DNA of 63,287 bases, filler included, from Hyphochytrium catenoides (lineage: Eukaryota; Protista; Hyphochytriomycota), in the NCBI GenBank assembly GCA_900088475.1. It is 9 parts of 9 records of this genome, joined end to end, with 100 filler letters (N's around TTAATTAATTAA, not from the genome) between each part and the next. Parts side by side here need not be neighbours in the genome. Positions count along the whole stretch, not along the records: positions 1 to 5,000 come from FLMG01001170.1; 8 more parts are not named here. One strand, 5' to 3'. The notes beneath the pieces were generated by a model. That model did no database searches. It worked only from the letters and a program-made list of their open reading frames with translations, and was not told the DNA's origin. The position numbers were made by a program, and so were the translations under genes. Positions 3,469 through 4,374 of this stretch are shown one piece after another (within the stretch, counting starts at the first letter, position 1; each line of letters starts with the position of its first letter).

Positions 3469-4374
3469 ATGAGGTTTTCAGCATTCCTCCTTGGTGTCGC
3501 GGTTGCCGCGGCCTTCCAGTCTTCTTCGCTATTCTCTCTGGCCCAAGAACAACAACCAAACAAGCTGGAACAAAGCGCTTTGCGAAGAAGAAACGAGGTC
3601 GTCGATAGCGGGGACGCAACGGGCAACAGAAGGCATTTAACTGAAGAAGAAGAAGAAGCCCACGTACTGGCGGTAGAAGAAGACGGTGTTCCTTCGGCCC
3701 ACCGTCTCCGAACAAACCGAACGACCAGCAAAAGACACCTCATCCGTCTTGAAAACGAAAGTTGTAAGATGTCACACTCTCCATTCCCAGATGGGGGAGT
3801 GATAGGTAAATGTCATGATGATGATTTTCTTGACCCGAGGAAGAAAGGCCCCACCGGAAGCGTGTGGCTCTCTGAACATACTTGCTGGGGCAATCACAGG
3901 TACTGGAAGAACTCGCGAGATCATCAAGATTTCACGTTAACCGGGAGGCATGTCGTCATTGACCTCAAGGACGCCAGATCGAAATGCATCAGCTTCCGGT
4001 CCGGGTGTAAGGACGACAGGCTACGCAAATTCTTTGATAAGCGTGCTTCCTCCGCGGCGTGGCGGTTCAATGACGTTCATTGTGATGACTATATTAGGTT
4101 CTATCCTGGAGATAACTGCCAAGGATTCTATAAGGAGTGGCCTCTTAAGGTAGAGCACTTCCCGATCAACTTCATCGAAGACGACATCAACGATGTGGTT
4201 TCCTCCTTTATGATCGTGAACACTGGCAAGGACGGGAGTATGGTTCCAGACAAGCCACAGAAGACGAGTTGTCCCAAACCTACCCGCAATCCCTATGCAT
4301 ACACCAGTGAGCCGTATTCAGACTTGGATGGATATATATTCACACAAACGATCGGCTATTATGCTGCCTACTAA
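3469..4374 (+). CDS. Intronless secreted protein with propeptide and two beta/gamma-crystallin-like repeats (resembles an oomycete secreted family)
   Basis: 301-aa ORF with a hydrophobic signal peptide (MRFSAFLLGVAVAAAFQ), RRHLTEEEEE and KRHL sites, then repeats VWLSEH..C..FDKRASSAAW and IRFYPGDNCQG..FPINFIEDDINDVVSSFMI carrying the (N/D)D..SS Greek-key-type signature. A paralogue lies at 1..288. Confidence 0.8.
   Translation: MRFSAFLLGVAVAAAFQSSSLFSLAQEQQPNKLEQSALRRRNEVVDSGDATGNRRHLTEEEEEAHVLAVEEDGVPSAHRLRTNRTTSKRHLIRLENESCKMSHSPFPDGGVIGKCHDDDFLDPRKKGPTGSVWLSEHTCWGNHRYWKNSRDHQDFTLTGRHVVIDLKDARSKCISFRSGCKDDRLRKFFDKRASSAAWRFNDVHCDDYIRFYPGDNCQGFYKEWPLKVEHFPINFIEDDINDVVSSFMIVNTGKDGSMVPDKPQKTSCPKPTRNPYAYTSEPYSDLDGYIFTQTIGYYAAY

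Follow-up and report, generated by a model that had tools for sequence, protein, structure and literature searches.

The window, meaning the whole stretch of DNA analysed, comprises 63,287 nucleotides (filler letters included) from Hyphochytrium catenoides (GCA_900088475.1) and consists of nine parts joined end to end. Its first part, a 5,000-base piece (positions 1 to 5,000, FLMG01001170.1), carries one gene in two copies arranged head-to-head (Table 1). Only the first 96 codons of the left copy are included, the gene being truncated by the edge of the piece rather than broken. Inverted repeats and alignment showed that the two copies lie in an inverted duplication with arms at about 1-890 and 2855-3800. 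The space between the arms is taken up by a tandem repeat rich in (TC)n tracts, with 770 bp per unit and about 2.5 units. We have rejected an assembly hairpin artefact as the origin of this arrangement, because the arms differ by 11-15% and contain in-frame indels. Downstream of the right copy, the hexamer AATAAA would fit a eukaryotic poly(A) signal. No Rfam family or tRNA was found when the 5,000-base piece was scanned. The gene was found in three DNA sequencing runs, all from one study, and in no RNA run. The DNA runs yielded short contigs and suggest that there may be a third copy or more. The exact 301-aa product had no record in the public assemblies or public protein collections searched. 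Two metagenome scans, one with protein patterns and the other with a 35-nt signal-peptide pattern, also gave no match.

Table 1. Features of the two gene copies and their surroundings (positions in the window; residue numbers of the right copy unless stated)
Feature	Position	Strand	Basis or remark
Left paralogue	1..288	-	First 96 codons: signal peptide, leader, start of Cys-domain; start at nt 288
Left arm, 5' of left copy	289..890	.	Pairs with about 2855-3468; inverted repeats I1, I4, I5, I6 and alignment
Right arm, shared non-coding DNA upstream of right copy	2855..3468	.	JC 0.154, 403 aligned nt
Right copy	3469..4374	+	Complete unbroken ORF, 301 aa (translation)
Predicted signal peptide, residues 1-25	3469..3543	+	Translation; GRAVY 1.40; AF2 helix 3-25
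Leader, probable propeptide, residues 26-91	3544..3741	+	AF2 disorder, composition, in-frame indels, dN/dS 0.40
ALRRRNE, residues 37-43	3577-3597	+	Left copy residues 36-42
GNRRHLTEEEEE, residues 52-63	3622-3657	+	Contains RRHL ([KR]RxL), then acidic run
39-nt in-frame insertion, residues ~70-82	3675..3714	+	Right copy only; DNA and protein alignment
N-R-T sequon, then T-S-K-R-H-L, residues 83-91	3715..3741	+	Proposed final processing site
Proposed mature protein, residues 92-301	3742..4371	+	8 Cys: 99, 115, 139, 173, 180, 205, 217, 268
Beta/gamma-crystallin-like core, residues ~155-256	3931..4236	+	pLDDT 77-93; Foldseek, VIA-align, BLASTP
AATAAA	4382..4387	+	8 nt past stop codon of right copy; read from sequence

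The product of the right copy is made of four parts, namely a hydrophobic signal sequence, a disordered charged leader, an 8-Cys domain and a low-confidence tail. In the translation, the N-terminus reads as M-R followed by a 14-residue hydrophobic core and the stretch QSSSLFSLA, and possible signal-peptide cleavage sites lie after A25 (S-L-A) or A15 (A-A-A). The leader that follows, of about 65 residues, is Cys-free and hydrophilic (GRAVY about -1.5), with 11 K+R and 13 D+E in residues 26-89. In the AlphaFold2 model computed from the family alignment, pLDDT is below 50 at residues 47-58 and 63-110, and the sole predicted element of the leader is a helix spanning residues 32-45. Within the proposed mature protein, low confidence extends over residues 92-154 and 257-301, on either side of the core.

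Searches of Pfam, NCBIfam and PDB sequences with the whole protein returned no match (Pfam none even at E 10), and a word-index protein search with the single protein as query was equally negative. Exhaustive searching of 1.8 billion representatives with phmmer retrieved two proteins only, both from Phytophthora (E 6e-5 and 1.6e-4). They are small secreted hypothetical proteins aligned to residues 188-261, and nothing in the same search matched the leader. The pair comparison by BLASTP with the Phytophthora protein P0002 gave 38% identity over 81 aa (pair E 6e-13). Profile searches in two length windows enlarged the family to about 60 members, of which the named ones all come from Phytophthora or Nothophytophthora and the others are a few unnamed metagenome entries.

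These small secreted Cys proteins (e.g., ETI48669.1 and KAG6975676.1; one relative is annotated as "Small cysteine rich protein") have the core domain in common with the H. catenoides protein. Positions C173, S195, W198, F211, C217, W224, F231-P232 and S245-F247 are near-invariant in the family. The Phytophthora relatives are nevertheless only 115-210 aa long and share just 25-38% identity with the H. catenoides protein, which has in addition the 65-aa leader, about 60 pre-core residues with 3 Cys and a 45-aa tail. In every one of the approximately 60 Phytophthora/Nothophytophthora relatives the domain stands directly behind the signal peptide, without a leader, and therefore it can be made without a propeptide.

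The best Foldseek match of the predicted core was spherulin 3a (1hdf, E 5.6e-4, prob 1.00, TMt 0.65). Beta/gamma-crystallin domains made up nearly the whole of the best 50 Foldseek rows. The best 18 rows of VIA-align, an independent aligner working all-against-all, all belonged to the beta/gamma-crystallin superfamily (Z 5.4-4.0, including the killer toxin 1wkt), and the ESM Atlas matches included rows annotated as Crystall/Inhibitor_I36. The sequence models behaved differently. The H. catenoides protein had no match to Pfam Crystall, Crystall_3 or Inhibitor_I36, the last of these was touched by only 4/43 family members at E 0.027 or worse, and the family profile searched against PDB sequences gave a chance xylanase row only. 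Since the structure searches agree and the sequence models do not match, we describe the core as beta/gamma-crystallin-like by predicted fold, probably a double Greek key, falling outside the superfamily at the sequence level.

Beta/gamma-crystallins carry the signature Y/F/W-x-x-x-x-Y/F-x-G with a conserved Ser, and a calcium motif of the form N/D-N/D-x-x-S/T-S. The core contains F-Y-P-G-D-N-C-Q-G (211-219) and N-D-V-V-S-S (241-246). In the former, the second aromatic of the signature is replaced by a Cys that is invariant in the family (Y212-P-G-D-N-C217-Q-G219). The latter fits the calcium-site pattern, and D-K-R-A-S-S (190-195) is a degenerate version of it. The predicted double Greek-key fold is thus like that of the microbial beta/gamma-crystallins (spherulin 3a, Protein S, clostrillin) and of the HM-1/WmKT killer toxin, although these are set apart from the present protein by its lack of a Pfam Crystall/Inhibitor_I36 match and by VIA-align Z values of only about 5. 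HM-1, a crystallin-fold killer toxin whose chain 1wkt is among the structural matches to the core, derives from a precursor of 125 aa that undergoes processing (PMC12715866).

A preliminary description of this DNA had placed three motifs, ALRRRNE, GNRRHLTEE(E/G)E and SKR(H/Q)L, ahead of the Cys-containing domain in both paralogues, and we have located all three in both translations. The region concerned, 3577-3753, corresponds to residues 37-95 of the right copy. Within the first motif, L-R-R-R (38-41) conforms to L-x-[KR]-R, the extended pattern for kexin, yet falls inside the predicted helix 32-45. The second motif, GNRRHLTEEEEE in the right copy, has GNRRHLTEEGE (residues 51-61) as its left counterpart; its RRHL site (RR 54-55) would lie in a low-confidence, disordered stretch of the model. 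The acidic runs after RRHL read T-E-E-E-E-E-A-H in the right copy and T-E-E-G-E-D-A-Q in the left one, neither having a closing Arg. The third motif is SKRHL in the right copy (residues 87-91, 3727-3741, with KR at 88-89) and SKRQL in the left (residues 73-77, within N-G-T-T-S-K-R-Q-L). The first Cys follows at residue 99 and residue 83, respectively, and the spacing from KR(H/Q)L to this Cys (8-10 residues in the right copy, 6 in the left) stays short despite the 13-residue indel upstream. The N-x-T sequon ahead of KR(H/Q)L is also kept in both copies (NRT/NGT). The further HRLR reported for the right copy is indeed there (residues 78-81, 3700-3711); as a motif it was rejected, as it reads x-R-L-R, out of register with R-x-L-R, and sits within the 13-codon insertion that only this copy has.

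To place these motifs against chance, the 73-residue leader was shuffled 20,000 times, the results referring to this one leader. The PEXEL-type pattern RxLx[EQD] was observed once, as RHLTE overlapping RRHL (residues 55-59 right, 54-58 left), and one such match was reached in 23% of the shuffles (P = 0.23). The fit of RHLTE to the PEXEL consensus RxLxE, put forward in the preliminary description, therefore stands in both copies as a formal pattern match, of a kind common in shuffled leaders. Two RxL matches were likewise unexceptional (P = 0.23), and a search with the R.LR pattern found no RxLR in either copy. The pattern [KR]RxL, in turn, occurred twice per copy against 0.15 expected (P = 0.008; post hoc, one leader), and the four dibasic pairs had P = 0.04 (post hoc, one leader). 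The doubled [KR]RxL, at a post hoc P of about 0.008, is the only leader feature to stand out.

The motifs had also been called conserved, a description that the comparison of the two copies did not sustain. The coding leader and the non-coding DNA upstream of it (JC 0.154, 403 aligned nt) are equally similar between the copies, and a stretch of identical residues as long as the longest one in the leader, 15 aa, arose in 13% of permutations. Copy-to-copy conservation weighs little because the duplication is recent and the upstream DNA equally similar; that the copies share the motifs is mainly due to their being young inverted duplicates, and we have rejected this conservation as a sign of function (identity run P = 0.13). 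Constraint on the leader as a whole is another matter. The indels inside the coding leader measure 3, 39 and 3 nt, those upstream 4, 5, 1, 3, 5, 1, 1 and 2 nt. Because all three coding indels, unlike the upstream ones, are multiples of three, and because dN/dS between the copies is 0.40 (dN 0.12, dS 0.30; few sites), the leader is, judging from its reading frame, truly translated and under mild constraint. Two synonymous copy-to-copy differences hit Arg codons of the motifs. The 19 codons after KR gave a dN/dS of 2.56 vs. 0.40 for the leader (few sites), with a non-synonymous rate higher than that of the leader (Fisher P = 0.001; few sites). A conserved prepro region joined to a variable cargo is a pattern seen in secreted toxins and effectors.

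The order of parts suggests pre-pro anatomy: behind a signal sequence comes a charged, disordered stretch free of Cys, which closes with KR(H/Q)L, and next a folded domain containing Cys. We give an even chance to the reading that the gene encodes a pre-pro secreted protein whose propeptide is cut at dibasic/[KR]RxL sites, the last of them at KR(H/Q)L, 6-10 residues before the first Cys. The signal peptide would be removed in the ER, and the leader would then be cleaved off at basic sites in the secretory pathway. The final cut would fall at K-R-(H/Q)-L, just before the first Cys, and an upstream cut at R-R-H-L, possibly also at L-R-R-R, may fragment the propeptide. Two candidate classes of protease appear to fit equally, and the sequence by itself does not separate them: convertases of the kexin/furin type, for which the cut would follow KR/RR, and RxL-type endoproteases, for which it would follow Leu. 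The leader would have the usual role of a pro-domain (folding aid, latency or sorting) rather than that of delivery to a host cell.

Two groups of known precursors are similar to this arrangement. Disordered N-terminal pro-domains that end in KR/RR and are removed by Kex2 have been estimated to occur in ~30% of 120 fungal effectors, and Kex2 prefers Arg at P1, Lys/Arg at P2 and Leu or another aliphatic residue at P4 (PMC8528282). The H. catenoides protein has the same part order as these fungal K2PP or kexin/furin pre-pro proteins, i.e., signal peptide, unstructured pro-domain within the first half of the protein, KR/RR and disulfide-rich domain. The features found in it include a hydrophobic N-terminus followed by a pro-domain-like stretch predicted to be nearly devoid of secondary structure (one helix, 32-45), and a KR/RR or L-x-x-R site at the leader end, before the folded domain (KR 88-89, 10 residues before Cys99). 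It differs from the fungal proteins in that its leader is long (~65 aa), it has three basic sites, and P4 at KR/RR is non-aliphatic, being Thr at T-S-K-R and Gly at G-N-R-R, with Leu found at L-R-R-R only. In diatoms, RRIL/RRNL and RXL are proposed endopeptidase sites in the precursors of frustule proteins, silaffin included (PMC4557024, PMC9650480). The fit of the RxL/RRxL sites to those of silaffins, noticed in the preliminary description, was borne out: R-R-H-L and K-R-(H/Q)-L share the form of RRIL/RRNL in Sil1p, cingulins and frustulins. Their placement is similar too, one [KR]RxL lying past the region of the signal peptide and the other closing the putatively removed segment. The cargo here is, however, a folded crystallin-like domain without repeats and not a Lys/Ser-rich biosilica protein.

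Some observations run against a propeptide. Thr and Gly occupy P4 at the KR/RR sites, and L-R-R-R, the site that fits best, is placed in a helix by the model. The motif conservation between the copies is not above chance, and the Phytophthora relatives do without a propeptide.

The leader could instead be kept on the mature protein as a disordered charged extension or linker, the R/K-L motifs being by-products of an R-, E- and L-rich composition present in both duplicates. We consider this possible, if rather doubtful. It would account for the one RxLx[EQD] and two RxL matches, which are expected by chance, and it agrees with identity blocks not above chance next to equally similar upstream non-coding DNA, with the tolerated 13-residue indel and with the leaderless Phytophthora relatives. 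It accounts poorly for a [KR]RxL that occurs twice, the second one close before the first Cys in both copies, for a dN/dS of 0.40 with amino-acid change lower than in the adjacent mature N-terminus, and for the two synonymous differences in motif Arg codons. The N-terminal region has also been weighed as a complex-plastid bipartite presequence. On that view, A-A-A|F would be the cleavage site of the signal peptide, and the residues behind it, acting like a transit peptide, would direct the protein to the plastid or periplastid space. The ASAFAP-type motif of diatoms has Phe at +1; residues 13-16 here are A-A-A-F, and the next 10 residues are Ser-rich. Past Phe16, however, the stretch is acid-rich (13 D+E, residues 26-89), unlike transit peptides, and the cargo is a Cys-containing beta/gamma-crystallin-like domain related to proteins that oomycetes, which lack plastids, secrete. 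Because of this acidic leader and the nature of the cargo, a plastid destination is extremely improbable.

A leader of the PEXEL or RxLR-dEER type would have R-H-L-T-E cut after Leu by an ER aspartic protease, with export of the cargo into a host cell, and might represent an early RxLR. In its favour, RHLTE has the form RxLxE and is situated in predicted disorder, 30-40 residues past the signal sequence. An acidic run comes after it, as in Plasmodium PEXEL and oomycete RxLR-dEER leaders, and the only relatives of the cargo come from Phytophthora. Yet the PEXEL pattern is a 23% chance event, neither copy has an RxLR, the HRLR is x-R-L-R in an indel, the acidic run lacks the closing Arg of an EER, and the Phytophthora homologues have no such leader. 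RxLR effector cargo is helical and Cys-poor, and beta-rich Cys-containing folds of the crystallin type are typical of extracellular proteins; the present cargo, beta-rich with 8 Cys, is unlike translocated RxLR cargo and of extracellular type. Membership of the RxLR-dEER class was thus rejected (no R.LR, no EER, leader absent from the homologues, beta-rich 8-Cys cargo), and with it the resemblance to RxLR-dEER that had been proposed. We judge host-targeting by this route to be very improbable. In Phytophthora infestans, RXLR was cut after Leu only in a disordered region near the signal peptide (Xu et al. 2024, PMC11754927). That rule leaves a small opening for an R-x-L-type cut at RRHL, which would concern processing and not translocation.

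The preliminary description had seen here a leader for multi-step secretory maturation or host targeting, possibly related to the origin of RxLR. Maturation is plausible from the pre-pro anatomy; the host-targeting or RxLR-origin idea is unsupported. On the translation and the structural model, the arginine-leucine motifs are most likely ordinary cleavage sites in the disordered propeptide of a secreted Cys-containing protein, i.e., an ordinary kind of feature, a pre-pro leader, on an otherwise orphan crystallin-like gene. A bolder proposal takes the doubled [KR]R-x-L with its acidic run as a working R-x-L cleavage and sorting signal, outside Phytophthora and on an extracellular-type crystallin-like cargo. 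Its reader would be an aspartic protease of the ER/Golgi, akin to plasmepsin V or to the enzyme that cleaves RXLR. This strikes us as very improbable. If true, diatom RXL, oomycete RXLR and apicomplexan PEXEL would be forms of one old cut-after-R-x-L step, later borrowed for host-targeting. Were the two [KR]RxL sites both cut behind their Leu, in a stramenopile that is not an oomycete pathogen, this would support R-x-L cutting as a general maturation step ancestral to the RxLR/PEXEL signals, an ancestral reading to which the present results lend no positive support.

With an ordinary propeptide, the practical value would be modest, in that constructs for expression or modelling should begin at about residue 90-92. 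The H. catenoides protein would then join, as a leader-bearing outlier, a family of crystallin-like proteins secreted by Phytophthora that has had no name so far.

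Nowhere in the duplication are the two head-to-head gene copies more alike than in the signal-peptide region, with 94% identity between positions 205-298 and 3459-3552, and its dS between the copies was 0.05, compared with 0.30 in the leader, the charged, Cys-free stretch that follows. Local gene conversion is one possible cause of this similarity, constraint another. Past the KR site at the end of the leader, the first 19 codons (3742-3798 vs. 57-1) carried 16 non-synonymous and 2 synonymous differences, corresponding to a dN/dS of about 2.6 vs. 0.40 for the leader, although these are small numbers. 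As judged from these few sequence differences, the N-terminus of the cargo, the 8-Cys domain, may have undergone diversifying change between the copies.

The Phytophthora and Nothophytophthora relatives of the cargo (P0001-P0062) form a family of secreted proteins of 115-210 aa, with one member of 460 aa containing several repeats, and a check of Pfam returned no family for them. The family consensus contains D-N-x-I-T-S and N-D-x-I-S-S, which match in form the calcium motif of microbial beta/gamma-crystallins. Hence, judging by these motifs, the relatives look like an unnamed crystallin-type family. Several of the records bear the names "Epsin-1," "Equilibrative nucleoside transporter" and "Necrosis inducing protein," which seem to have been carried over from neighbours.

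We have also compared the piece with three DNA sequencing runs. In contigs from all three, the match to the shared upstream region ended at position 3445, with unrelated sequence beyond, and the leader region (3559-3741) was covered by a contig of one run with 10 differences and 4 gaps. Together, this divergence and the variant contig suggested that the gene, or its upstream region, is present in the genome in more than two copies or alleles. Word depth over positions 4677-5000, at the right end, was 5-20 times that over the gene in all three runs, so this end is probably a dispersed repeat.

Further features of the piece
Feature	Position	Strand	Location
50-codon ORF	4738-4890	minus	inside the high-depth right end
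Telomere-like inverted pairs	about 1250-1275 and 2020-2050		within the ~770-bp tandem units

No ORF of note, tRNA or Rfam family was found in positions 1198-2900, between the two gene copies. In this interval a unit of roughly 770 bp is repeated in tandem about 2.5 times. Long runs of (TC)n occur in every unit, as does a short pair of telomere-like repeats in inverted orientation, the TTAGGG type facing the CCCTAA type.
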